From Epiperipatus broadwayi (taxonomy: Eukaryota > Animalia > Onychophora): a stretch of 64,000 nucleotides of DNA. The notes beneath the pieces were generated by a model. The model saw only the letters and a program-made list of their open reading frames with translations, was not told the DNA's origin and did no database searches. The translations under genes and the position numbers were made by a program. Positions 6,180 to 64,000 of the stretch are shown piece after piece (within the stretch, counting starts at the first letter, position 1; each line of letters starts with the position of its first letter). The stretch is from the NCBI GenBank assembly GCA_028023455.1, contig JAQFVV010000005.1, positions 11,470,001 to 11,534,000 on the forward strand, given 5' to 3'.

Positions 6180-6217
6180 TCCCCAGACTAGTTTCTAACT
6201 TGTGACTTTCATCAGTA
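6180..6217 (-). ncRNA. Hammerhead motif copy in inverted arm (family 1)
   Basis: Minus strand: CTGATGA-AAGTCACAAGTTA-GAAAC-TA-GTC-TGGGGA. The 5' strand of stem I is cut off by the inversion junction. Confidence 0.55.
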
Positions 6218-14459: not shown

Positions 14460-14700
14460 CCGGTGGGAGCTAGATAAATAAACAATATACTTCAAAATGA
14501 AATATAGAGAGCATACCAATAGCTCAATCAAGCTGTTCCCATGCCCAGACCAATTGGTTTTGAGCTTTTCACTCATCTCAGTGAGGAGCTAGAATATTCA
14601 GACACTAGATCTAAAATATCAACTCAAAACCTAACATTTAGTTAGTACATAACAATTATTTAAGTAGAAACTCTGAAATTCTTTTGGTCTGGGAATGGGA
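14460..14700 (-). mobile_element. Decayed relative of the hammerhead repeat families
   Basis: cactagatctaaaatatcaactcaaaacctaacattt resembles family 2 (33420-33460). A hammerhead-like motif lies at 14542-14587 on the minus strand. Confidence 0.55.
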
Positions 14701-29918: not shown

Positions 29919-31649
29919 ATGAAACACTTCATACAGAAAAAAAAACCTTTCAATATCAGAATATGTTACTACAAGATGGCTGCAAAAATTTACTTAAAAA
30001 TGCGTGAAAGGATAAATAGACATGAAAAATTATATCATTGTACTTTATGTAGTTATAAGACTGCTGCTAAAAGTAGTATAAATAGGCATAAAAGAATACA
30101 TACTGGAGAAAAACCTTTCTATTGTAATGTTTGCAAATTTAAAACTGCTGAGAAAATTAGATTAAAAATACACCAAACATTACATACAGGAGAAAAACCA
30201 TTTGAGTGCACTTCTTGTGATTACAAGACTGCTGTAAAGTGGAGATTAAAAAGTCATGAAAAAATACATAGTGAAGAAAAATTCCATTGCAAGTTGTGTG
30301 CTTTCAAAGCTGTTCAAAAATATAGTTTAAAAGTGCATGAAACACTTCATACAGGGGAAAAACCTTTTAATTGCAATGTATGTGATTACAAAAGTGCAAC
30401 AAAAAGTTATTTAAAAATTCATGAAAAAATACATACACGAGAAAATTTGTTTTATTGCACTCTATGTAGTTATAAGACTGCTATAAAAAGTGGTATAAAA
30501 AGGCATGAAAAGACACATACTGGAGAAAAACCTTTCCACTGTAAACTTTGTAATTATAAAAGTGCTGATGAAAGTAGATTAAAAATACATCAAAGAATAC
30601 ATACAGGTGAAAAACCATATCATTGCACTTTTTGTGATTACAAGACCTCTGCAAAAGGTAATATGAATAGACATGAAAAAATACATACTGCACAAAAAGA
30701 ATTTCATTGCAAGTTGTGTGATTACAAAGCTGTTCGAAAATATAGTTTAAAAGTGCACGAAGTACATCATACGAGAGAAAAATCTTTTAATTGCAGCAAA
30801 TGTGAATACAAAAGTGAAACTAAATATTATTTAAAAATTCATGAAACAATACATACACAAGAAAATATGTTTCATTGTACTTTGTGTAATTATAAGACTG
30901 CTATAAAAAGTAGTTTAAAAAGGCATGAAGGAATCCATACTGGAGAAAAATCTTTTCATTGTAACCTTTGCAATTATAAAAGTGCTGCAAAAAGTAGATT
31001 AAAAATACATCAAACAATACATGCAAGAGGAAATCCATTACAGTGCACTTTTTGTGATTACAAGACTTTTGAAAAGAGTTGTATAAATTGGCATAAAAAA
31101 ATACATTCAAGAGAGAAACGTTTTCATTGCAACCTCTGCAGTTTTAAAACTGCAAATAGAAGTAGATTAAAAATACATCAAACAATACATTCAAAAGAAA
31201 AACCTTTTCAGTGCCCCGTATGTGATTACAAGGCAGTTGTTAAAAGTCAATTAAATTTTCATATAAAAACACATAATATTAAAAAATCTTATTTCAGAAT
31301 AACTGCTCAACGATATTGTTTTCAAGAAAATGAAAAAATGAATTTACAGGAAAATTATTTTCATGGTGCTTTATATAATTATAAAAGTGTTACAAAAAGT
31401 AATTTAAACTTACATGAAGGAGTACATACTGGAATAAAGCCTTTGCATGATATAATGTGTGATTATAAAACAGTTTCTCAAATGTTAGATCAAAATAAAA
31501 ATATATATATTCCAAAAAAATCTCTCGCTACAGAAACTTTTAAATGTCATTTGTGTGATTATACACACTTAGAAAAAACTCTCTGGGAAAGTCATGAAGC
31601 AAGTCATTTCACAAATTATGATACAATAGAGATTCTCATTCAACTATAA
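29919..31649 (+). CDS. C2H2 zinc-finger array protein (576 aa ORF; 15 contiguous canonical fingers, two degenerate, one terminal)
   Basis: Repeated F/Y-x-C-x2-C-x-Y/F-K-x7-L/I-x2-H-x3-H with TGEKP-type linkers. No effector domain is visible. The true start or upstream exons are uncertain. Confidence 0.85.
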   Translation: MKHFIQKKKPFNIRICYYKMAAKIYLKMRERINRHEKLYHCTLCSYKTAAKSSINRHKRIHTGEKPFYCNVCKFKTAEKIRLKIHQTLHTGEKPFECTSCDYKTAVKWRLKSHEKIHSEEKFHCKLCAFKAVQKYSLKVHETLHTGEKPFNCNVCDYKSATKSYLKIHEKIHTRENLFYCTLCSYKTAIKSGIKRHEKTHTGEKPFHCKLCNYKSADESRLKIHQRIHTGEKPYHCTFCDYKTSAKGNMNRHEKIHTAQKEFHCKLCDYKAVRKYSLKVHEVHHTREKSFNCSKCEYKSETKYYLKIHETIHTQENMFHCTLCNYKTAIKSSLKRHEGIHTGEKSFHCNLCNYKSAAKSRLKIHQTIHARGNPLQCTFCDYKTFEKSCINWHKKIHSREKRFHCNLCSFKTANRSRLKIHQTIHSKEKPFQCPVCDYKAVVKSQLNFHIKTHNIKKSYFRITAQRYCFQENEKMNLQENYFHGALYNYKSVTKSNLNLHEGVHTGIKPLHDIMCDYKTVSQMLDQNKNIYIPKKSLATETFKCHLCDYTHLEKTLWESHEASHFTNYDTIEILIQL

Positions 31650-33357
31650 TTTGATGTATCATTTTTACATTTTCAAGTAAAATTTTTTAATGTTGTAGTT
31701 TTTTGCATCAAGTGAAAAAATTGAATGCTACGGTTTATCTGTCATTTATTGATTGATTGAAAGTAATTTTGATGATTGATTATAATTTTCATAATCAATG
31801 ATAATTATAGAGCAGCATGTGTGGGAAATAAATTGTGACATTTTTTATAGAATAAATAAAATATTGTATCAGACTTATTAAATTTAGATTTATTAAAAAG
31901 CATTTTTGTTTTACAGAATGTTTTTATAATATAAGAAAATTTGTGTACTTTAATTCGAAACAACACAATTGTAGCATATTGTAATTAATTCCTTAAGAAA
32001 ACAAGTAGCAAAATTAATAAGTTGAAATCATTTTGAAAGCAAACATATCTGACTTTATTACAGTCATATTGATTGTCCCTAGCAAGTATATTTTTATACT
32101 TCTGTCTCAATTTTTTTTTTTTATTCTATGATATGTTACCACAAAGCTATTGAGAATAAGAAACAATGATAGTTTTTCAGAAATATTAAAATATTTGCAT
32201 TTGTTATAGAGTAGTAAATCTTAAAGTTCACATTTCTTTATATGTTTTAGAGAATGAGCTGCATTGAATATTTTCAATAAAGCAAATTTTGAATGTGCAA
32301 GAAAAAATTTAAGAATACAAGAAAGAATATACATTGGAACATTTTTAAAATTCTCTACAAATTGAGATGGATTACTTTCTATGATAGCTTTTTGAATAAT
32401 TAAATAATGGCATAAAAATAGTAATTATTTCAAATCATAATTGATTCGTCTCCCCAAGAAAATATTTAACAAAGCAGTTAAATATGTTCATGGCAAATTT
32501 TACTTATGTTTTAGTTGCCATCTGTGTTTCCTTCATAATACAAAATGATGAGTTCAGATAACAGATTTAGATTAACATTACATTTAAAGAAGATAAGTTT
32601 AGTCTCCTACTCTCTAAATACTACTTGGAATTTAATATTGATGTTATGTGTGAAAGATTTCTATAGATCATATTGGAATATCTGGTGTACATGTTATATA
32701 CTACAATCCTAGATGTGGAAAAAAAGTATTGTCTGCTGAAAGAAAATTTAGTGTCTTACTGAAATGATCAGTCATATCATGTCCCACTTACATTTAGTAA
32801 GATAAAACAATTGAAAAAAATTATTAACTTTTATGCCAATTCATAAAGTTGTGTAAAGTATAGAATATGAACCGCACTTTTGATATTTAGTTAGATGAAA
32901 CTGTTATTTTATGCATTTGAGATCTTAACACAATTTTATAACTATAATTTTATGTGAATAAATAGTAGCAAAAAAGAAAAACTATTTTAAGTAGATTTAT
33001 TATATTCCTAACAGGAACTATTATTTCGGCATGATCTCCAGGTCTTGCTGGAGCTATGCTTTTGTATTTCATTTACAAATACAAGTAGGTGTATATACAC
33101 ACACATATTATAGAACTTTGGTTGTTCATCTATTGTCATAAATTTATGTTGCACCGTATGGAATTATGTTACTCTGTTTACAACTCAGATACAGTTGTCT
33201 TTAATCCATTTGTTTCTTCTTTTTTTTTTTTAATATTTCTATTGAAATGAAACACAAATTAAATAAAATCAATGAGGATTGCCAATTCCTCAACAAGCTT
33301 TGTGATAAATGCTTAGCCAGAGCCAGCATTTAAAATATCAGTCAGGACCCCCCCCAA

Positions 33358-33400
33358 ACCTCTGACCATGGTTTCGTGCTTTGGCACCCCTCAGAGAGGT
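33358..33400 (-). ncRNA. Type-I hammerhead ribozyme motif (family 2)
   Basis: Minus strand: ACCTCT-CTGAGGG-GTGC-CAAA-GCAC-GAAAC-CATG-GTC-AGAGGT. All three stems pair; one core change (A9 to G). Confidence 0.8.
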
Positions 33401-33928
33401 GCTAGGGTAGGTTCACATACTAGATCTAAAAATACCAACCCAAAGCTAGCATTTATCTAAAAGTTATCTATTGAGAGAAAATCTGAAATTTTCAGACACC
33501 TGCGTGTCTTCAAACCCAGCTATCCAACTCAAATAGCTGTATTGGGCTGAGAGATCTTCAGCCATACCATATATTAGTAGTCTTAGCAATATAACATTGC
33601 ATAAGACTTAAGGCAGAGACTATAAATAGTCAAAATAAGAGTCATAGATCACATGACCCAATTCTCTTAAGCTCATCAGATATAATCAATGAGGATTGCC
33701 AATTCCTCAACAAGCTTTGTGATAAATGCTTAGCCAGAGCCAGCATTTAAAATATCACTATCAGGACCCCCCCCCAAACCTGATCATATAGCTATTTGAA
33801 TTGGATAGCTGGGTTTGAAGACATGTAGGTGTCTGAAAATTTCAGACTTTCCTCTCAATAGATAACTTCTAGATAAATGCTGGCTTTGGGTTGGTATTTT
33901 TAAATCTAGTGTGTGAACCTACCTTAGC

Positions 33929-33970
33929 ACCTCTCTGAGGAATCCAAAGCATGAAACCATGGTCAGAGGT
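33929..33970 (+). ncRNA. Type-I hammerhead ribozyme motif (family 2)
   Basis: ACCTCT-CTGAGGA-ATC-CAAA-GCAT-GAAAC-CATG-GTC-AGAGGT. Core intact; stem II has a 1-nt deletion. Confidence 0.75.
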
Positions 33971-34439
33971 TTGGGGGGGGGGGGTCCTGACTGATATTTT
34001 AAATGCTGGCTCTGGCTAAGCATTTATCACAAAGTTTGTTGAGGAATTGGCAATCCTCATTGATTATATCTTACATGCTTAAGAGAATTGGGTCATGTGA
34101 TCTAGACTCTTATTTTGACTAAAAATTAAATAACTTTGTTAAAAGAATCTGATTATGTAAAAATTATTTTTTTCTCCAATTTAAACAATTATCCTATGAC
34201 ATTCTAATATCAAGGCAAATCAGACTATCAGAAATAGGTTTTGCATATGTACTATGGTATTTTGATAATATAGTAAAAAAATAATAAGAATTGCATTAGA
34301 TTGTATAAACTAAACAAGTTAGTTGATCTTGTCTAGTGTTAGCATAATTTTTTTAATATACATATTTATTTTTTTGTTTATCCATTATAAATCCAAATCT
34401 CATATCCTAACATAATTGCAGATCTAATGTGTGAATGTT

Positions 34440-35561
34440 AATACCAAGGGGTTGTATCAACTGATACAAATGACCAAGCTGTTCTTCAATACAGTACAAA
34501 AAGGGGACCGGAAAGTTGGAGACCTGTAATACCCCAGAAAATGTGGAATGCAGTGGTGACTCACGTCCACCAAATATATGGACACTATGGGATATGGAAA
34601 ACTGAAAAGTGGCTTAGACGGGTTTTATTAGCCAGGCATGCATGGGACTATCGTGAGGATGATCAGCCAATGTGAACCTTTCCAGAAAACTAAGCCTACT
34701 AATAGGAATTATGCAGGCCCAATGAGCTCCATAATCCCAAAGAAACCACATGAGATGATTGCGATAGATTATTATGGACCATTGCCAGCCTTTAATAGAA
34801 AAAAATAATTTGTTGGTGGTGTATGATCTATTCAGTAAATTTGTGACTGCATATCCCATGACTCAAGCAAATACCCGAAACACCATATGTCTCCTTGAAA
34901 AGGAATATTTTACGGTAATGGGAAAACCTCAAAGCATCCTCCCGGATCATAGCACACCATTTATCTCTGGAGAAGGGAAAGCATGGGTTCAGAAGTCAGG
35001 GATCCAACACATACTAGCATCAATTAGGAATCCACAATCGAACCCATGTGAGCGGGTGATGCATGAGTTGGGTAGGTTGTTTAGGATGTACATCCCAACT
35101 AATCACCGAGGATGGGTTAAAAAGATTCCAGAAATACTGAACTACATAAATTGGGCAGTTAATGAGTCCACAGAGTTCTTTCCTGGGCGGCTCCAGTTTG
35201 GCAAACACGCTCCTAAATTAATCAAGGCCAAAATACCAGGACCAAAGAAATGCAAATAAATGTGGAGGAGGACCAAGAGCAGGCATATCATATACTTGTG
35301 AAAAGGAGTCAGGAAAGAAATAAACATACACTGGATAGACCTCATCGGTTTAAAGTTGGTGATCTAGTCATAGTGAAAACCCCACATGTGAGCGAACTGG
35401 AGAAATTTAAGAAATTTTGCAGTGTGTATGAGAGACCTTTCCCTATTGTTAAGTGTCAGGGGGATAATGCATTCTGGGTGAATACTGGGCAGGAGGTAAC
35501 GGGATCATACAATGCTCATTCCCTCAAGCCCATGCCATTACGAATGGTTCAAGGTATTTAG
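34440..35561 (+). mobile_element. Ty3/Gypsy integrase remnant
   Basis: HVHQIYGHYG (zinc-binding), VVYDLFSKFVTAYPM, PQSILPDHSTPF, RNPQSNPCERV and FKVGDLVIVK...YERPFPI (GPF-like). Frameshifted ORFs 34774-35259 and 35250-35561. Confidence 0.9.
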
Positions 35562-40660: not shown

Positions 40661-43600
40661 GGCTGCAGAAAGGAGTTTGCTATTAACTGAAAGGAGACCC
40701 GACCCTTTGATTCCTCTTGGAGGCCTTAAAGGAACCGAGCAGGGCAAATTCCTAATGTCCATTCCATACGTTCTTGTCGTTGCAGCTGTTATTACTGTGA
40801 TTATTCATATAGTATATGAACATGGATGGGCTGCTCACCAACACGCCTTAGCCAGCGTGGTGAGTTTATTGGCTTTTTACCTCTGAGTTTAAGATCAAGA
40901 AACACCATGGTCTTTCTTCTCAGTGCCTGATAAGGCAGAATGAATGTGTAAATGATAAATATTTTTCCAATACATATATACAATTATGACAGACAAAAAT
41001 AAAGCATGGCCCTTATTCCCAGGAGGCTGTAAAGTCACCAACCAAGGCAGCGGTTGGTGGCCGAAGGCGGAGGGTGCTAAGAATCCCCTGATTGCGGACC
41101 CAGGCTGCCATTTGATGACGACTTTATTTAGGTACTTACAACTGCAGATCACTTTCAAGTGAAAGAAGATTGCAAGAATTAGAAGAACTGTCTTATATTA
41201 AATGGGACATTATTGGACTTAGTGAAGTTAGAAGAAAAGGATAAGAAACAATTGATTTAAAAAGTGGACATATACTCTATTATAAAGGCACACATATTGG
41301 AAATACAAGTGGAGTAGGATTCATTATAAATAAAAAGTGGAAGAACAATATTGTGGAGATTGATGGTGTATCGGACAGAGTGGCAAGATTAGTTATACAA
41401 CTTAATAGCAGATACCAAATGCAGATAATTTAGGTTTATACCCCAACAAGTTCTCATAGTGATGAAGTAGTAGAAGATTTTTATATGGATGTACAAAAAG
41501 CTTTTGATCAGAGTAAACAACATTTTAAAATTGTTATGGGAGACTTTAATCCTAGAATTGGTAGACAAATGAAAGATGAAATTGCTGTAGGTAATTTTGG
41601 TTATGGTAATAGAAATGAGAGAGGACATAGACTTGTGGAGTTTGCAGAAAAAGAAAAACTTTATATTATGAATTCATTTTTTGAGAAAAATGTTAAAAGG
41701 AAATGAACATAGAAGCATCCAAATGAAGGTACAGCAGAATTGGATTCTATTTTGACTAACAGAAAATACATATTTCAAGATTGTAATGTTCTTAATAAAT
41801 TTAACACAGGAAGTGATCATCGATTAGTAAGGTGTAAGTTACGTGTTAATGTAAAACTAGAGAGACAAAAATTATTAAGAAAAACAATATTTACAGTTGA
41901 TATTCCTAATCTTCAGAAACATTCTAATGAATTTAAATTAGAACTTACAAATAGCTTTCAAATGTTAGGAGATTTTGAACATGATTCAGATTTGAATGAA
42001 ATTAATATGAAAATAACTGATACACTTTTAAAAACTGCAACAAACATAGCTGGTAGAAAAAAGCAGCAATTGACTAATAAAATTTCTACTGAGACTAGAG
42101 AATTTATGAAGAAAAGAAGGAATATGAAGATATACAAAAATGATGTATTAAAAAGAATTGAATATCTCGAATTTTGTAAAATGGTACGGAAAAGAGTTGA
42201 AAATGATATAAGAAAGTATAACTGTGAAATAGCAAGGAAAGCTGTAGAAGAAAATAAAAGTCTCAAAAATGTTAAACAACATTTTGGTATTGGTAGGAAA
42301 TTTATATCTGCAATAAGAAAAAAAGATGGAATTATTACTAAAAAGAGAGATGACATCATGAAATTGGTAGAAGATTTTTATCAAGAATTATATAGTAATA
42401 AAGAACAAGTACCTCCTACATCTATTACATCTTCCGAATTGCCCAGAATTTTAAATGAAGAAGTGAGACATGCAATTAAGTGTACGAAGAAAGGAAAGGC
42501 TCCAGGAAATGATGAAATTATAATTGATATATTAAAAGAAGCAGGTGAAGAAATAGAAACAATTTTAGCAAAGTTATATACCAAATGTCTAAATGATAAA
42601 GATGTACCGGAAGATTGGAAGAATGCAGTAATAATATTAATATTTAAAAAAGGTGATAAAGAAGATATTAGAAATTACAGACCTATCAGCCTTTTATCAG
42701 TTTTATATAAAAATTTTACCAAGATAATTACAACTCGTCTACAGAGAACTTTGGATTTCCACCAACCAAGAGAACAAGCTGGATTTAAAAGTGGTTTTAG
42801 TACAATAGATCATATCCAGGTATTGAGAGAAGTCATAGAAAGGACAACCGAATATGAGTTGTCATTATGTTTTGGATTTGTAGATTATGAAAAGGCATTC
42901 GATTTTATACACATTTCTTCAGTGATTAAAGCATTGGATCATCAAGGTATAGATCCAGGATATTGTCATATTTTAAAGAATATTTATAAAAATGCAACAG
43001 CAACAATTAGATTACATAATGATACTGGAAAAATCAACATTGAGAAAGGTGTAAGACAGGGTGACTCCATATCTCCAAAACTCTTTACAGCAGTGCTGCC
43101 AGAAGTATTTTTTGGATTAAAATGGGAAACTAAAGGAGTGAAAGTAAATGGAGAGTATTTAAGTCATTTAGATTTTGCAGATGATGTAGTTGTTTTTGCA
43201 AATAATGCTTCAGAGCTGCAGGAAATGTTGCAGGAGTTAGCAGATGAAAGTAGAAAAGTAGGACTAAAGATAAATGTTAAAAAGACTAAAGTAATGTTTA
43301 ATCGATTTGCTCAAAATATGAAAATAAAGATTGATTATGAAGAATTAGAAGAAGTTAACAGTTACAAATACCTTGGTCAGATTATTAATACAGATGGAAA
43401 CATAATGGAGGAAATTAATCATAGAATTAAACTTGGTTGGAGTGCTTTTGGTAGAAATAACTTGATACTAAAAGGAAATATGCCTATGTGTTTGAAAAGG
43501 ATGATTTTTAACAAATGTGTTTTACCAGTTCTTACTTATGGATCTGAGACTTGGACACTTAATAGAAGAGCAATACAGAGACTTCAGACCATATGTTGGG

Positions 43601-43921
43601 AGTAACAAGAAGAGATCGAAAACGCAATGTATGGGTAAGACAACAAACAGGTATTACTGACCTTATTGAAAAAATTAAAAGATTGAAATGGAGTTGGGCT
43701 GGATATATTGCTAGAAGAGATGATAATAGATGGACAATTGAAATTTTAAAATGGATTCCAAGAGATTATAAAAGACCCAGAAAGAGATCACATGTGAGAT
43801 GGATGAATGAAATAAGAAAATGTGCAGGGGTGTTGTGGAGAAGAGAAGCTAAAGATCGGAGAAGATGGATTAAACTTGGAGAGACCTTCATCCTGCAGTG
43901 GATTGATAATGGTTGATGATG
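40661..43921 (+). mobile_element. Full-length RTE-clade LINE with 13-bp TSD
   Basis: AATATATAAGAAT at 40648-40660 and 43922-43934. GC-richer 5' UTR, APE and RT domains, and a 3' TGATGATGA tail. Confidence 0.95.
41125..43916 (+). pseudogene. RTE APE-RT polyprotein, disrupted
   Basis: APE motifs YLGTYNCRSL, WDIIGLSEVRR, VMGDFN and SDHRLV. RT motifs GKAPGNDEI, YRPISLLS, GVRQGDSISPKLF and DFADD. Stops at 41242, 41431, 41704 and 41710, and a frameshift near 43590. Confidence 0.92.
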
Positions 43922-58475: not shown

Positions 58476-61157
58476 AAAAATTCAGACATTTTATTTTTAT
58501 TTAACAAATACACTACATTTTATTGCTTATTAATTGGATCAGGATAATAACATCTTCACCTAAGGAAATTTCCAGTGCATTAATGCTTTTATTATCTATT
58601 CTCAGAACAGTAGCTGGCACTGAACAATCATTTTCAAATCTATGACAATCGAAAATTATGTAAAAAGTTTTGATGTAGCAAATATTGTACAATTATTTGG
58701 GTATATCAAAATTATAAATTTAAACAGCAATTGAATATGAAATTTTAATTTTGAATGAATAATATTTTTTTCTTTTTAAAAGTCAAATTAATATTACTGG
58801 GAAACAATATGCTAAAAATATACATATTTATTAAAGAATAAATAAAGTTATGTATACAAGCATTTATTGAAATGCTAGAATATTCCAGAATTAGAATAAA
58901 AAATTTGTATACAGAAAAAGAAATTACATATAAAGAAATGTTCTCTTTATGCAAATTAGAAAAACAGATAAAAAGTCTGCAGAAGAATTAAGTGGAGTTA
59001 AAAAAAAGTAATCTAGGGGAAAGATAGACTAATGAAAGTGGCTATCTCAAAATAATGTGCTTACAAAATTGCAGAAATAAAGAGACTATAGATATTCAAA
59101 CTCTAAGGAGATAGGAACTATTAAGAGATCTATGCAATCTTGTTCTCCACTGCAAATAGTGAGTTCATTTATTAATATCTACTAATATTATTATTTAGAG
59201 TAAATAAACTCTTGAATTTGTTATTAAACTTTGTGTTATGTTTTAATACACCTATTCAGCTGCCAATTGACTGGTTGACTTAGAATATATATGCTGTAGT
59301 CAGCAGTCTTAAAGCTGGATATATTATGTGTCAGCATCAACAAAAGCATTTAGGAAAAATACTAAGAGCAGTTTTGACAAGAAAATTTAATTTGTGTGAT
59401 ACAATTCAGATGTGCAGTTGAAACGATGCAGAAAACCATGACCTTTGATATAAAAAATCCAGTCAATGTCAAATATGTGCAAGTCATGTGAAATATATCC
59501 TTATGAATGAAGAAACAGATGATATGTTTAAATTGTTTATGTGATCCAAAGCCACCCAAAGAATAACATTAAATACATATTTGAAAACTATATTGTTGAA
59601 ATTTTCAGTGCTTCTTTGTAGGAGGATGCAGTCACAAAATAAAACTGAATATGACTTGATCCTATGAACTTGAGCAAAAGATTGCAAATTTAAAACATTT
59701 ATTGACAAAATGTTACTAGATTAGCTACTATGGGGAATAATAGACAGCTTATAGAAATATTACTAAGGAAGAAGGAATTAGCATACAAGATCCCTACTGA
59801 ACAAGCATTAGCTTATGAAGCCATGGTAGATCATAGTGAAACTGTGAAATAGAATGATTTTTCCAAAATGAGTATAAATGTGGCAAAACTACAAGAGATA
59901 AATAAAAAATAAACCAAGACTCCTACTGGTTTTGTTGTGGAAAGATGGGTTATTTAAAATCTAACTACACATTTAAAATGAAAAAATTATTTAACTGTTG
60001 ATTGAAAGATCTCTTGTCAAAATTATGTAAGCAATGAACAACTAAGCAAGATTTACAGTGAAAGAGTAAATTGAGGAGAGCAGTGTCTAAAAAGTTGACA
60101 ATGATAAATAAATTGAAAGATAGTGATGATATGCTTAAATTAAACATGAAAATCTATCAAAATGTATAAATGGAGATCAACATTGGGGCAGGTATGTAAA
60201 TATCATGAATAGACTGGAATATGATTGTAGAAAGACAAACATCAATAACTCTTGTCAGACAAACAACAATTGCATAGCAGTTAGAGGAATGGCTACAGTG
60301 CAAATATGAGTAAATAGCAATAGGGAACAATTACTATTATATGCATCAGAATAGAATATTAACCCACCTTTAAGAAGTTGATTTAAACATCTGAGGGTAA
60401 TAGATCATAATGAATGTAAAAATTAGAAGCCGAAATAAAGAAACAATTCCCATAATTCTTTAAAACTAATCTAGCAGAGTTCAAATCATCACCAATTGAT
60501 ATTGAGTTAGTTGATAATGCCCAGCAGGTCATACATAGACTAAGGAAAATTGCCTTTGCACTTAAGGCAAAAGTTGAGAAGGCATAAAATGAATTAAGAC
60601 AATTACACCTGAGGAATCAGACTGAGCTATACCAATAGTAACAATGTTAAAATTTTATGGAAGTGTAAGAATATGCAATGTCTATAAAGTTACAGTCATC
60701 ACATACACAGCTAAAGGAGAATAATCTGTATCTAATGTGAAGGAAATACTAGCATCTTTGAAATGACTAGTTATTTCTTGATTTGAAAACTTTCATCAAA
60801 ATCTGGTCACCAAGAGAACCACAATCATTGACTATAAATATGCACATGGTATTATTTAAGTTCAATAGACTACCATATGGAATATCCATAGTAACTGTTC
60901 CAGGTAAAAATAAAAAATGTATTATGTTGAATAAATGGCATTATACTGTACATAGATGATATATTATAGGTTGCTGACAGCTAAATAAAATTAAAAAAAA
61001 TAGTATACTTAGTCAAAATAAGAGTCATAGATCACATGACCCTATTCTCTTAAGCTTGTAAGTTATAAACAATGAGGATTGCTAATTCCTCAACAAGCTT
61101 TGTGATAAATGCTTAGCTAGAGAAAGCATTTAAAATATCTCTGTCAGGATCCCCTAA

Positions 61158-61200
61158 ATCTCTGACCATGGTTTCATCCTCTGACACTCCTCAGAGAGGT
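61158..61200 (-). ncRNA. Type-I hammerhead motif (family 2)
   Basis: Minus strand: ACCTCT-CTGAGGA-GTGT-CAGA-GGAT-GAAAC-CATG-GTC-AGAGAT. Core intact; stem II imperfect. Confidence 0.7.
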
Positions 61201-61602
61201 GCTAGAATAGGTTCAGACACTAGATCTAAAAACACCAACCCAAATCTAGCATTTACCTAAAAGTTATCTATTGAGTGGAAAATCTGAAATTTTCAGATGC
61301 CTACATGTCTTCAAACCCAGCTATCCAACTCAAATAGCTATATGGGGCTGAGAGATCTTGAACCATACCATATATTAGTAGTCTTTGCCTTAAGTCTTAT
61401 GCAATGTTATATTGCTACAACTACTAATATATGGTTTGGCTGAAGATCTCTCAGCTCCATATAGCTATTTGAGTTGGATAGCAGGGTTTGAAGACATGTA
61501 GGTGTCTGAAAATTTCAGATTTTCCACTCAATAGATAACTTTTAGTTAAATGCTAGCTTTAGGTTGGTGTTTTTAGATCTAAAGTCTGAACCTACCCTTT
61601 CC

Positions 61603-61643
61603 CCTTTCTGAGGATTGCCAGAGCACGAAACCATGGTCAGAGG
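61603..61643 (+). ncRNA. Type-I hammerhead motif (family 2)
   Basis: CCTTT-CTGAGGA-TTGC-CAGA-GCAC-GAAAC-CATG-GTC-AGAGG. Core intact; one mismatch at the base of stem II. Confidence 0.75.
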
Positions 61644-64000
61644 TTTGGGGAGGGGTCCTGACAGAGATATTTGAAATGCTTTCCCTAGTTAAGCATTTAT
61701 CACAAAGCTTGTTGAGGAATTGACAAACCTCATTGTTTATAGTATACTTAGTCTGTTAAAAATAAAAATTTGGTGCAATGTATTTGGATTATGAAAAAGA
61801 TAAAATTTCTGGGATATATTGTTAATGAAAATGGAAAATGTCCACACCCAGAAAAAGTAATTTCATGAAGAATGCCCTGAAGCCAAAAAATTGTAAATAA
61901 TTTTAAGCATTCCTAGTATTGGTAAACTTCTTTGAGGTTTTTCTGGAGGTAAGATCACACATAGTTATGCCCTTTTATAAACTTCTAAAGAAGAATAGTA
62001 GAAATATGGAAATTGGAAGATATGACTTTTCAATGAGTAAAAGAATTACTGTTCACTGTTAGGTTATTAGTGAATTACAATGAATGGCAAGAAATAATTA
62101 TTACAACTGGTGCTTCAGAATTTGGTTAGGAGCAGTCTTATCACATGTAGTGCATAGTGGGAAGACCCTATTGTGTATGCTTAAAGAAAATTGTCTACAG
62201 CCAATACAAACTACAGCCGAATAGACAAAGAAGCTTTGGCATTAGTGTATGCAAGGAAAAAATTCCACCAGTATGTATTTGAACAGTTTTTTAAGATTTA
62301 CACTGACCATAGGCCATTATTAAGACTTCTAGGAAAAACAAGCAAAACCCAGGCCATGCTAGTCAGTGAATGATAAGATGGATTAAAATCTTAGTATCTT
62401 ATATGGCTATAAATTGCATTATAGACCCAGAAAACAGATTAAGCACATGGATGTTCTGTCTAAAATGTTGGACCAAATCATAGCTGAATAGACAGAAATA
62501 AAAATCTCACCTTAAAACATCAATAAAATATAGATAGCTGGTTAAATGACCAGAAAATTGGTCTGCAGTAATATGGAATGCTCAACAAAATGTCAATTGT
62601 GTAAAAATTGTATTTTAATGATGGACCATGTGATGACTCCCCCTAAAGACAGGAGAAGAATCTTCTGTTTATTACATGAAGGACATCTCAGTGTTGTTAG
62701 GATGAAAGAATTAGCACCCGCATATGTTTGGTATCCAGAGTTGAACTGCAACATTGAACAGGCTGAAAAATTATCAAGCATGTCAAAGCACAGCAAATTT
62801 ACTAGCTAAGAAATTAAATCCTGACTTGAAACTTGGCAATGATTACAATATATGTCATGCAGGGCTGTTTCATGGAAAATAATCTTTATATCTATAGTTG
62901 TAAACAAGTACAGAAAATATAATACAATTTTTGAATAAACTTTTTGTGAAACACAGTTACCCAAGGACTTCAGTAATGAATAACAAAACTGAATTCTGCT
63001 CAGAGAAATTCCTTACTCCAAAGAGATATGGCATGTATTAATACCATCCTATTACCCACAATCTAATGCAATAATGGAAAAAGTAGAACAACAACTAAAA
63101 ATGCAATAAACAAGCAGGAATATTATGCTGGCATACATGAAGCAATTATTGCTGCTATGTTTTATCAGCATTTTATACCCAGAATAATCACAAAAAAATT
63201 ATTGACATTCTGCTATTAAGATGAATAAGAAAACAGTCTATATTATATCCAAATAAAAATAGAAAGAAAAATGACTATTTGAAAAATGTAAAATTTACCA
63301 GGAAGCAAAATGTATGGATTAAAGATATATAGTAAAGAGAAAATGGCTACCAGAAATAATTAAAAAAATAATATATGAAACATACACAAAATAAGATTAG
63401 ATGACAATTGAGTATTTAAATGTCAAACCATATTCGAGAATGGAGAACAGAGCCATTAGAAAATGTTATTCTGAATTCAGAGAAAAATATCTGATATTTC
63501 TGATAAAATTGAATTAAAAACGTTGGTTCTTCTGTTTAAGAAGCTATCAAAGTAACAAATGAACTGGGAAAAAGAAAAGATGTTGAAGACAGAGGAAGAA
63601 AATAAAATCTCAACAAGGCCTGCCAGAGCATAGAAGAGACTGATAAAGTTACAAGTCTATTGCAAATAAAGCAGACAATATAAATAAAAAACTAGAAAAT
63701 CTGTATATAAATTCTGCTTATTTCTAGTGTAAAAGGAGGAATGCTATATGTATATATGTAACCTTAAGTTCTGCATACAGAACTATGCTTAGGTATTATG
63801 CTGGAATATCTAAATATATATAGTTTATTTTCTTTTAAATAAATCATTTTGCATATTAAATGTAGTAAATAATTTAATCTGGAAAAAATATTGATCAAAA
63901 GTTATATTTATTTATGGTAAGTTTAACTAAGATGAGTTTAATTATTGTTAAAAGTATAGGTATAACTAATTTTGAAATTATAAATATTTTAAAAGTATTT

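Follow-up and report, generated by a model that had tools for sequence, protein, structure and literature searches.

A decayed retrotransposon in the onychophoran Epiperipatus broadwayi is interrupted by an inverted pair of non-coding, hammerhead-bearing repeats, which raises the question of whether such a fold-back arrives in a single event and which machinery integrates it. We analyzed the locus within a 64,000-nt stretch of contig JAQFVV010000005.1, hereafter the window, whose own coordinates are used throughout. We consider it probable that the insertion is one integration of a non-autonomous repeat of the animal non-LTR "retrozyme" type; a Penelope-like element (PLE) most likely supplied the RT/GIY-YIG protein that mobilized it.

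Two head-to-head Family 2 copies interrupt a Gypsy element

The flanks of the insertion, translated in frame, hold many stop codons and belong to one decayed pol gene. Judged by its order of domains, RT with a YxDD motif followed by RNase H and integrase (the integrase match being weak; Table 1), the host is a decayed Ty3/Gypsy LTR retrotransposon. From the position of the LYIDD codons it follows that the target-site duplication (TSD) begins 38 bp past YIDD, in keeping with the ~40 bp given by an initial annotation of the window.

The insert consists of two 5'-truncated copies of Family 2, a hammerhead-bearing unit of ~423 nt without an ORF, whose positions are given here with the prefix e. 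The copies stand head to head, one with a canonical 3' end and the other running 49 nt beyond it. The initial annotation had described a fold-back with ~320-bp arms and a ~37-nt spacer, and we found arms of 319 and 322 nt that are ~88-90% alike and lie 37 nt apart. The inverted arms match at 90% identity over 231 nt (61152-61382/61420-61650) and at 92% over 90 nt (61064-61153/61652-61741). The spacer has the length first reported but is not a separate element: it corresponds to the loop of a hairpin native to the unit, forms part of the right copy, and likewise precedes the arm in ordinary tandem copies of Family 2. Sequence in the junction zone is compatible with either copy, owing to an imperfect 11-bp inverted repeat native to the unit (e53-63/e100-110). 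On the outer side the left arm extends 49 nt farther than the right, and this tail shares a perfect 5-nt microhomology with the target (GACTA; 9/11 bases). The last 3 nt of the right copy overlap the second TSD copy.

Table 1 Features of the insertion and of its host element in the window
Feature	Position	Strand	Basis or detail
L-Y-I-D-D codons, RT of the decayed host retrotransposon	60948-60962	+	frame translation
TSD copy 1, ATAGTATACTTAGTC	61000-61014		100% match to copy 2
One-sided tail, unit e1-e49, past the canonical 3' end of the left copy	61015-61063	-	
Left copy, sense on minus, unit ~e100 to e423, 5'-truncated at the hairpin	61064-61382	-	
Left hammerhead, predicted cut between 61164 and 61163	61157-61201	-	motif and family alignment
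Junction zone, 16 nt, fits both copies	61373-61388		
Natural hairpin loop of the unit (~e63-99), part of the right copy	61383-61419	+	
Right copy body, ends at the canonical 3' end e421-423 (...CATTGTTTATA)	61420-61741	+	
Right hammerhead, predicted cut between 61638 and 61639	61601-61645	+	motif and family alignment
TSD copy 2, ATAGTATACTTAGTC	61739-61753		exact repeat of copy 1
RNase H fragment, same decayed pol gene	62191-62373	+	PF17917, E=1.2e-13
Integrase_H2C2, weak match	62546-62809	+	PF17921, E=4.8e-4

The left arm is 94.1% and the right arm 93.5% identical to the family majority; each is thus ~6% diverged from it, and the insertion is therefore old. Derived changes in the arms comprise one shared site and 38 private ones, and thus give no hint that the arms underwent gene conversion or had a template variant in common.

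The insertion duplicated its target site

The genome contains at least 118 candidate paralogues of the host Gypsy element. In 16 insertion-free paralogues the flanks are contiguous and the homologue of the 15-mer is present once, and the repeat that brackets the insertion is therefore a true TSD. The initial annotation had called an exact 15-bp TSD and had named uninterrupted Gypsy copies as the comparison that could speak against it; none of the 16 empty sites carries the 15-mer in duplicate. Its view that the non-coding unit is mobile is borne out by the same evidence, a true TSD pair and 16 empty paralogous sites.

Family 2 insertions have a common layout across 30 loci

The genome holds at least 3,945 copies of Family 2. 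Its members are mostly solo or tandem, with inverted copies as well, and the depth of Logan contigs at the window locus was dominated by this repeat family; one contig set that may be RNA (X5) matched at the level of the family alone. Across 30 loci, we counted 44 same-strand adjacencies, 17 head-to-head and no tail-to-tail, a polarity of 17:0 (p=1.5e-5). For these 30 loci, this supplies the tally of fold-back against tandem configurations that the initial annotation had proposed genome-wide. The head-to-head breakpoints vary between loci, with overlaps of 1-6 nt, and the outer ends are coupled: 16 of the 17 composites combine one canonical end (e419-423) with one tailed end (~e49-62, with a cluster at e52-62), as compared with 8 canonical and 5 tailed ends among non-inverted insertions (p=7e-5 for coupling). 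If the two DNA strands were indeed primed from different zones in these 16/17 cases, one from the canonical and one from the tail zone, this might point to a dimeric RNP holding two primers ~50-60 nt apart on the template.

TSDs of 13-16 bp were present at 13 of the 30 loci, the 95th percentile of the control being 9 bp; counted as sites, there is the 15-bp TSD described here and 13 further ones of 11-16 bp (12 loci and a second composite in the window). A single TSD of 13-16 bp encloses 11 of the 16 other head-to-head composites. Together with the one around the present composite and the exclusively head-to-head junctions, this upholds the earlier claim that the inverted structure is created in a single event. 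Directly 3' of the TSD, considering both strands, the trinucleotide NTT was found in 19/28 cases (background 0.137, p=7.5e-11) and GTT in 10/28 (p=5e-12).

Hammerheads of the two arms retain the core bases and have a damaged helix II

Both arms carry the motif CUGAGGA...GAAAC-CAUG-GUC (61608-61638 on the plus strand and 61194-61164 on the minus strand). All conserved bases of the type I core (C3 U4 G5 A6 N7 G8 A9, G12 A13 A14, A15.1-U16.1 and C17) are kept in each, and the core is the same in the Family 2 majority (47 copies). In that majority, helix I has 6 bp and helix II, GUGC-CAGA-GCAY, has 4 bp. The right arm has UUGC-CAGA-GCAC, in which the change of G10.1 to U gives a U-C mismatch. The left arm has GUGU-CAGA-GGAU, in which two changes leave one Watson-Crick pair, two wobbles, and one mismatch. 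The "intact core" first reported in each arm is thus correct for the core bases and does not extend to helix II, which is damaged in both; judging from their sequences, the ribozymes of both arms are probably impaired.

Searches with the Rfam hammerhead models returned no match at the gathering threshold in the whole window, none even at E<=10 in 60950-61800, and none at E<=1 at 10 other Family 2 loci, and the ribozyme call consequently rests on the motif and the family alignment. The 2-bp helix III may account for the failure of the models, and PLE-type hammerhead variants are known to escape standard models (PMC7761336). That no model recognizes the hammerhead counts against the PLE reading.

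Insertion ends show no concentration where the hammerhead is predicted to cut: within 8 nt of e323 lie 3/34 inner ends, with 1.3 expected, and no insertion end falls exactly on the cut site. The latter speaks against a template of cleaved or circular RNA for these Family 2 copies.

The layout is that of a PLE insertion

Inserted PLEs are 5'-truncated and partly tandem, lie beside an inverted copy that is itself 5'-truncated, bear a tail at only one of their ends, and carry the hammerhead in the pLTR (Craig et al. 2021, PMC8557442). A PLE protein, once purified, cleaves either strand of the target and extends it, its RT starts at two adjacent internal sites with the interval between them forming the tail, and hammerhead cleavage is not required for the reaction (Frangieh et al. 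2024, PMC11167929). The architecture of the locus is this normal published signature and is not peculiar to the locus; the match makes the case real and clean, but of a known kind. It is from insertion architecture, and not from homology to an autonomous PLE, that we infer a PLE enzyme.

The genome holds at least 10,242 candidate GIY-YIG domains, some of them in open frames that reach 901 aa, in tandem arrays repeating every 3.14 kb, and as -/+ pairs. Within the window, a 621-aa RT ORF (41740-43605) was considered as a PLE and rejected: its RVT_1 domain is preceded by an Exo_endo_phos_2 fragment and is not followed by a GIY-YIG domain, as in a LINE. That the sole RT ORF in the window is a LINE speaks against the PLE assignment, as does the finding of no PLE-like ORF in the 3.3-kb surroundings of 29 Family 2 loci. 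Nor was a PLE-like ORF found at 4-16.5 kb of the window.

For a PLE-type integration, we infer the following order of steps. An endonuclease would nick the top and bottom strands of the Gypsy RT gene with a stagger of 15 bp, in both cases directly 5' of NTT, and each freed 3'-OH would prime reverse transcription of Family 2 RNA. The bottom-strand primer would start at the canonical zone (e421-423, with 3-nt microhomology) and produce the right copy, and the top-strand primer would start ~50 nt farther downstream in the RNA, at a second zone (e49-60, with 5-nt microhomology), and produce the left copy with its tail. Both cDNAs would end short of the full unit, and their ends would be joined at the natural hairpin, the stems supplying homology. 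The outcome would be a single TSD around two head-to-head copies whose 3' ends face outward, with a tail on one of them.

Twin priming by a LINE (non-PLE) RT on multimeric Family 2 RNA would invert the 5' segment when the second nick primes internally, and the product would look palindromic because the template is a tandem repeat. Its topology would be identical, with the 5' ends central; the copies cover adjacent stretches of a dimeric template (e100-423 plus e1-49 in the left copy, ~e61-423 in the right), and LINE RTs occur in the window and in flanks. However, the 3' ends of Family 2 are defined, and a poly(A) or simple-repeat tail was absent at 23/23 of them. Moreover, two discrete 3' end zones with a one-sided tail have been described for PLEs only (PMC8557442, PMC11167929), and elsewhere the canonical arm terminates on its inner side at varying positions (e8, e72, e106, e316, e341, e380, and e386) rather than next to the internal priming site. 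We regard LINE twin priming as unlikely. "Contiguous twin priming" on a single RNA was also considered as a general model and rejected; it fits the window locus alone, since the inner ends of the canonical arm vary elsewhere.

A two-event origin appears less likely still, whether a second copy inserted in the opposite orientation beside or within the first one, or an inverted duplication followed by replication template switching at the hairpin. The 5' ends do concentrate at the natural hairpin (6/34 inner ends at e91-106, expected 1.3, p=0.002), perhaps a structure-prone site, and the arms have just one derived change in common. By contrast, one TSD pair surrounds both copies here and in 11 other composites, independent insertions should yield both orientations instead of 17:0, and the outer ends are coupled in 16/17.

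It is harder yet to credit a fold-back or MITE-like DNA transposon that moves whole with Family 2 units as its terminal inverted repeats. The junctions of the window insertion and of loci L023 and L024 do fall on or close to one and the same hairpin and share its loop. However, the ends are asymmetric, with the 49 extra nt on the left side alone, breakpoints differ at most loci, TSDs of variable length (11-16 bp) are atypical of cut-and-paste elements, L023 is a mirror image of the window insertion rather than a copy, and most family members are solo or tandem. An assembly artefact, in the form of a chimeric fold-back read or a mis-joined repeat, is just as improbable: none of the short Logan contigs spans the palindrome and PLE structures are known to trouble assemblies (PMC8557442), but the flanks join into a single unbroken Gypsy pol gene in which the native 15-mer is precisely duplicated, two read-derived contigs (X1 record 1 and X3 record 9) cross the left junction, and the same grammar recurs in ~16-17 other composites.

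Implications of a probable PLE-type origin

The locus shows that a non-coding repeat with a hammerhead is mobile as a unit and that its inverted state dates from its arrival. For annotation, such fold-backs are best treated as single PLE-type insertions and not palindromic satellites, MITEs, or assembly errors. The window insertion is clean and datable because its empty site is known from paralogues. The polarity of 17:0, the end coupling of 16/17, the nick stagger of 11-16 bp, and the symmetric NTT motif are numbers new to the PLE field. We suggest, tentatively, that Family 2 may be the first genome-scale evidence for three propositions jointly: (1) that animal hammerhead retrozyme repeats integrate by two-strand target priming in the manner of PLEs, with linear or multimeric RNA that is unprocessed as the source and not ribozyme-cleaved circles, (2) that the two start zones are used in an obligately asymmetric manner, and (3) that the endonuclease makes symmetric nicks 11-16 bp apart, both of them 5' of (G)TT on their own strand.

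The fold-back is predicted to form a hairpin of -482 kcal/mol, so that the dsRNA inference of the initial annotation is sound in thermodynamic terms, and its transcript would be a plausible source of dsRNA. In transformed D. melanogaster, siRNAs arise from rearranged Penelope copies that contain long inverted repeats (PMC3681739), and the window insertion is likewise an inverted PLE-type structure able to fold into long dsRNA. Unlike the Penelope case (PMC3681739), its arms are just 88-90% complementary, the copy is old, and it is known here from sequence. We offer a dsRNA or silencing role of the fold-back as a hypothesis with Drosophila precedent.

Comparison with known systems

Inversions of L1 are said to arise by twin priming, as reportedly described by Ostertag and Kazazian in 2001. 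In L1 twin priming, as in Family 2, both strands prime, the 5' segment is inverted, the inner junction has microhomology, and a single TSD results. In contrast to L1, Family 2 insertions have no poly(A), both outer ends lie in defined start zones, and the inner ends are mostly not adjacent on the template.

With PLEs, Family 2 has in common head-to-head inverted 5'-truncated copies, partial tandems, and a one-sided tail. Both also have a pair of 3' start zones with the hammerhead ~100 nt before the start zone, are inserted where each strand offers an AT-rich NTT motif for nicking, and leave TSDs that vary in length. Reverse transcription starts 85-92 nt past the hammerhead cut in the PLE of PMC11167929 and 93-101 nt past it in Family 2. 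Unlike PLEs, Family 2 has no ORF and measures only ~423 nt. Two differences weigh against the PLE reading: the tail is 49-62 nt long in Family 2 and 30-40 bp in the PLE literature, and Family 2 has short junction microhomology whereas PLE initiation in vitro is reported to be non-homologous.

Like Family 2, animal non-LTR retrozymes (Cervera and de la Pena; PMC7761336; 10.64898/2026.07.22.740005) consist of tandemly repeated non-coding units a few hundred nt long, each with a type I hammerhead whose palindromic helix III is weak (AC-CAUG-GU), and they abound in an animal genome rich in PLEs. Their literature (PMC7761336; 10.64898/2026.07.22.740005) describes tandem arrays and circRNAs and leaves TSDs, tails, and head-to-head insertions unmentioned. 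Animal retrozymes have been proposed to be non-autonomous PLEs (Li et al. 2026, bioRxiv 10.64898/2026.07.22.740005), and Family 2 would tie such retrozyme-like repeats to Penelope integration through the scars of integration, beyond similarity of pLTR sequence.

Target-site duplication and structure of the insertion

The initial annotation had described an exact 15-bp target-site duplication (TSD) around the Family 2 fold-back. With the left flank as query, the genome yielded at least 118 candidate paralogues, approximately 70% identical. Alignment was possible for 16 of them; in each, the left and right flanks adjoin directly and a single homologue of the 15-mer is present, as in AATAGTATAC-ATAGTCTG, indicating that the insertion duplicated a 15-mer native to the Gypsy sequence. 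None of these insertion-free copies (0/16) carries the 15-mer in duplicate, and the TSD stands. With one TSD pair and an empty site in 16 paralogues, the view that the unit is mobile and that a single event generated the inverted structure is also right. The insertion lies where it had been placed, ~40 bp past YIDD: the LYIDD codons occupy 60948-60962, and the duplication starts 38 bp past YIDD. On the downstream side of the insert, this decayed gene matches RT_RNaseH and, weakly, Integrase_H2C2, a domain order (RT-RH-IN) consistent with a Ty3/Gypsy pol gene.

Repeat finding recovered the reported arms of ~320 nt with a ~37-nt gap; the arms measure 319 and 322 nt, and the gap 37 nt. The right copy runs from ~e53/63 to e423 with its sense on the plus strand, and the left copy from ~e100 to e423 and then e1-49 with its sense on the minus strand. 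These copies meet 5' end to 5' end, and a 16-nt stretch (61373-61388) fits either copy. The left arm extends outward 49 nt (61015-61063) beyond the right arm, an asymmetry absent from the initial annotation, and the final 3 nt of the right arm overlap the duplication. The proposed 37-nt spacer does separate the arms but is not a separate element: it is the natural loop of Family 2, contiguous with the right copy just as it is with the arm in ordinary tandem units. Two short DNA contigs cross the left junction (run X1, 60700-61033; run X3, 60700-61025); among the short contigs of the public runs, none spans the palindrome.

Features of the insertion and related sites (window positions unless a contig is named)
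Feature	Position	Details
Exact 15-mer ATAGTATACTTAGTC	61000-61014 and 61739-61753	
Inverted arm pair	61152-61382/61420-61650	231 nt, 90%; repeat finding
Inverted arm pair	61064-61153/61652-61741	90 nt, 92%; repeat finding
RT_RNaseH match	62191-62373	E=1.2e-13; same decayed gene, downstream of insert
Second Family 2 composite	33256-34133	minus full, minus partial (e423 to e317), plus (e146 to e423) + tail e2-54
GIY-YIG domains (examples)	C12394:20942626-20950119; C2:33557098-33558269; C6351:2388234-2389184	genome contigs

The Family 2 unit and its ribozymes

In the 5.6-Gb genome, at least 3,945 candidate sequences match the right arm, with identities of 92-93% for the best. The reference unit (423 nt, e1-e423), taken from the natural tandem copy L018, lacks an ORF and contains a natural imperfect 11-bp inverted repeat (e53-63/e100-110) with a loop of ~36 nt, and a hammerhead motif with a predicted cut after e322. 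The majority motif of 47 copies, CUGAGGA-GUGC-CAGA-GCAY-GAAAC-CAUG-GUC with a 6-bp helix I, reads as a type I hammerhead whose helix III spans 2 bp and whose loop is palindromic. Rfam hammerhead models detected no Family 2 copy, and the motif is therefore the basis of this assignment. Hammerheads of this kind, with a weak helix III, are reported to act as dimers (PMC7761336). Both arms had been said to carry an intact core; every core base is indeed kept, but helix II is altered in both, by G10.1 to U in the right hammerhead and by two changes in the left.

Divergence from the family majority is ~6% for each arm, and the changes are nearly all private (18 left, 20 right, 1 shared), with arm-to-arm identity of 88%. 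This divergence fits two majority-like copies of simultaneous origin that decayed independently, without gene conversion. At an age of ~6%, an intact duplication (15/15) is not improbable (0.94^30 ~0.16).

The predicted fold of a 61015-61738 transcript is one hairpin of ~320 bp (-482 kcal/mol, z=-38.6), which would sequester either ribozyme. A precedent for the suggested dsRNA source comes from transformed D. melanogaster, in which rearranged Penelope copies with long inverted repeats give rise to siRNAs mapping precisely to the inverted portions (PMC3681739). The public runs are short contigs, none recorded as RNA, with signal over the insert coming from the whole of Family 2.

Other hammerhead sequences lie in the window. 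A Family 2 relative at 14503-14680 (minus strand; e195-369, ~70% identical), whose core no longer fits the motif, may be an older subfamily or a relic of a Penelope-like element (PLE) pLTR. "Family 1" hammerheads at 6215(-), 6475(+) and 11178(-) have CUGAUGA...GAAAC-UA-GUC and a minimal palindromic helix III; the first two, minus then plus, lie head to head.

Head-to-head insertion across the family

We surveyed 30 Family 2 loci of 3.3 kb each. Adjacent copies were on the same strand in 44 cases, head to head in 17 and tail to tail in 0 (two-sided binomial p=1.5e-5). Inner breakpoints vary between loci, with overlaps of 1-6 nt, indicating that the composites did not arise by copying a single fold-back master; the hairpin is enriched for inner ends (6/34 at e91-106 vs 1.3 expected, p=0.002). 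Outer ends are of two kinds: canonical ends stop at ...CATTGTTTATA (e419-423), with unique DNA and no poly(A) beyond them (23 ends), and tailed ends continue through e1 to ~e52-62. One end of each kind was found in 16/17 head-to-head composites, in contrast to 8 canonical and 5 tailed ends in non-inverted insertions (p=7e-5).

Exact flanking repeats of 13-16 bp surround 13/30 loci, including 11 other head-to-head composites; in mismatched controls, the 95th percentile was 9 bp. We examined the target immediately 3' of each duplication, taking both strands, in 13 TSD-bearing loci (among L001-L029) and the window composite 33256/34123. NTT was present in 19/28 (background 0.137, p=7.5e-11) and GTT in 10/28 (p=5e-12), a symmetric (G)TT motif shared by both strands, the two nicks being 11-16 bp apart. 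The second composite in the window has the same pattern: head to head, one canonical and one tailed end, and an 11-bp TSD, AAATTAAATAA.

An integrase-core ORF fragment (rve, 34774-35259) adjoins that composite, and ~360 bp separate a Family 2 tandem insertion from a tRNA gene (L014:2185-2257, minus strand; Rfam tRNA, 38.8 bits). A run X8 contig from another sample joins the arms on opposite strands at 61149/61656, a different breakpoint, at a high depth of 575, indicating that an abundant fold-back variant exists elsewhere.

Proposed insertion mechanism

From the observed anatomy we infer the following steps. The Gypsy gene would be nicked on both strands, 15 bp apart. The bottom-strand 3' end (...TAT) would pair with AUA at e421-423 and prime the right copy; the top-strand 3' end (...TAGTC) would pair with GACUA at e50-54 and prime the left copy, which would thus begin with a tail. 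The top-strand primer matches the unit at 9/11 bases over e50-60. Both putative start zones, as read from sequence, end in TTTATA and follow a 5-bp stem-loop (e24-40, e396-413). Both cDNAs would then end early and anneal through the unit's hairpin stems. A model resembling L1 twin priming, in which both cDNAs derive from adjacent stretches of one dimeric RNA, fits the present locus but is not general, since the inner end of the canonical arm varies in other loci.

Comparison with Penelope-like elements

The genome contains at least 10,242 candidate GIY-YIG domains. Some occupy open frames as long as 901 aa, some recur as 3.14-kb tandems, and some form close minus/plus pairs with head-to-head polarity as in Family 2. 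A 621-aa open RT ORF in the window (41740-43605, plus strand) was rejected as a PLE: with RVT_1 (E=3e-35) and an Exo_endo_phos_2 fragment upstream, it is a LINE. A 576-aa ORF (29919-31649, plus strand) encodes many C2H2 zinc fingers (zf-H2C2_2, E=9e-81).

For animal hammerhead tandem repeats ("non-LTR retrozymes"), co-occurrence and pLTR similarity have prompted the proposal that they are non-autonomous PLEs (preprint 10.64898/2026.07.22.740005; review PMC7761336); TSDs, tails and head-to-head insertion are unmentioned in these two accounts. PLE insertions are 5'-truncated and often partial tandems, forming pseudo-LTRs with a hammerhead; an inverted 5'-truncated copy often adjoins the 5' end, and a tail of 30-40 bp is often present at a single end (Craig et al. 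2021, PMC8557442). A purified PLE protein, unlike R2 and L1, cuts and extends DNA on both strands, with an ATT motif preferred on each; it initiates reverse transcription at two neighbouring internal positions, the interval between them forming the tail, and hammerhead cleavage is dispensable (Frangieh et al. 2024, PMC11167929). In the PLE studied, reverse transcription begins 111-118 nt inside the ORF, with the ribozyme cutting at +26 (PMC11167929), which places the start 85-92 nt past the cut; the canonical zone of Family 2 lies 93-101 nt past its predicted cut. Collectively, our analysis argues that the locus is a known kind of structure, the standard scar left when a non-autonomous hammerhead repeat integrates in the Penelope manner.
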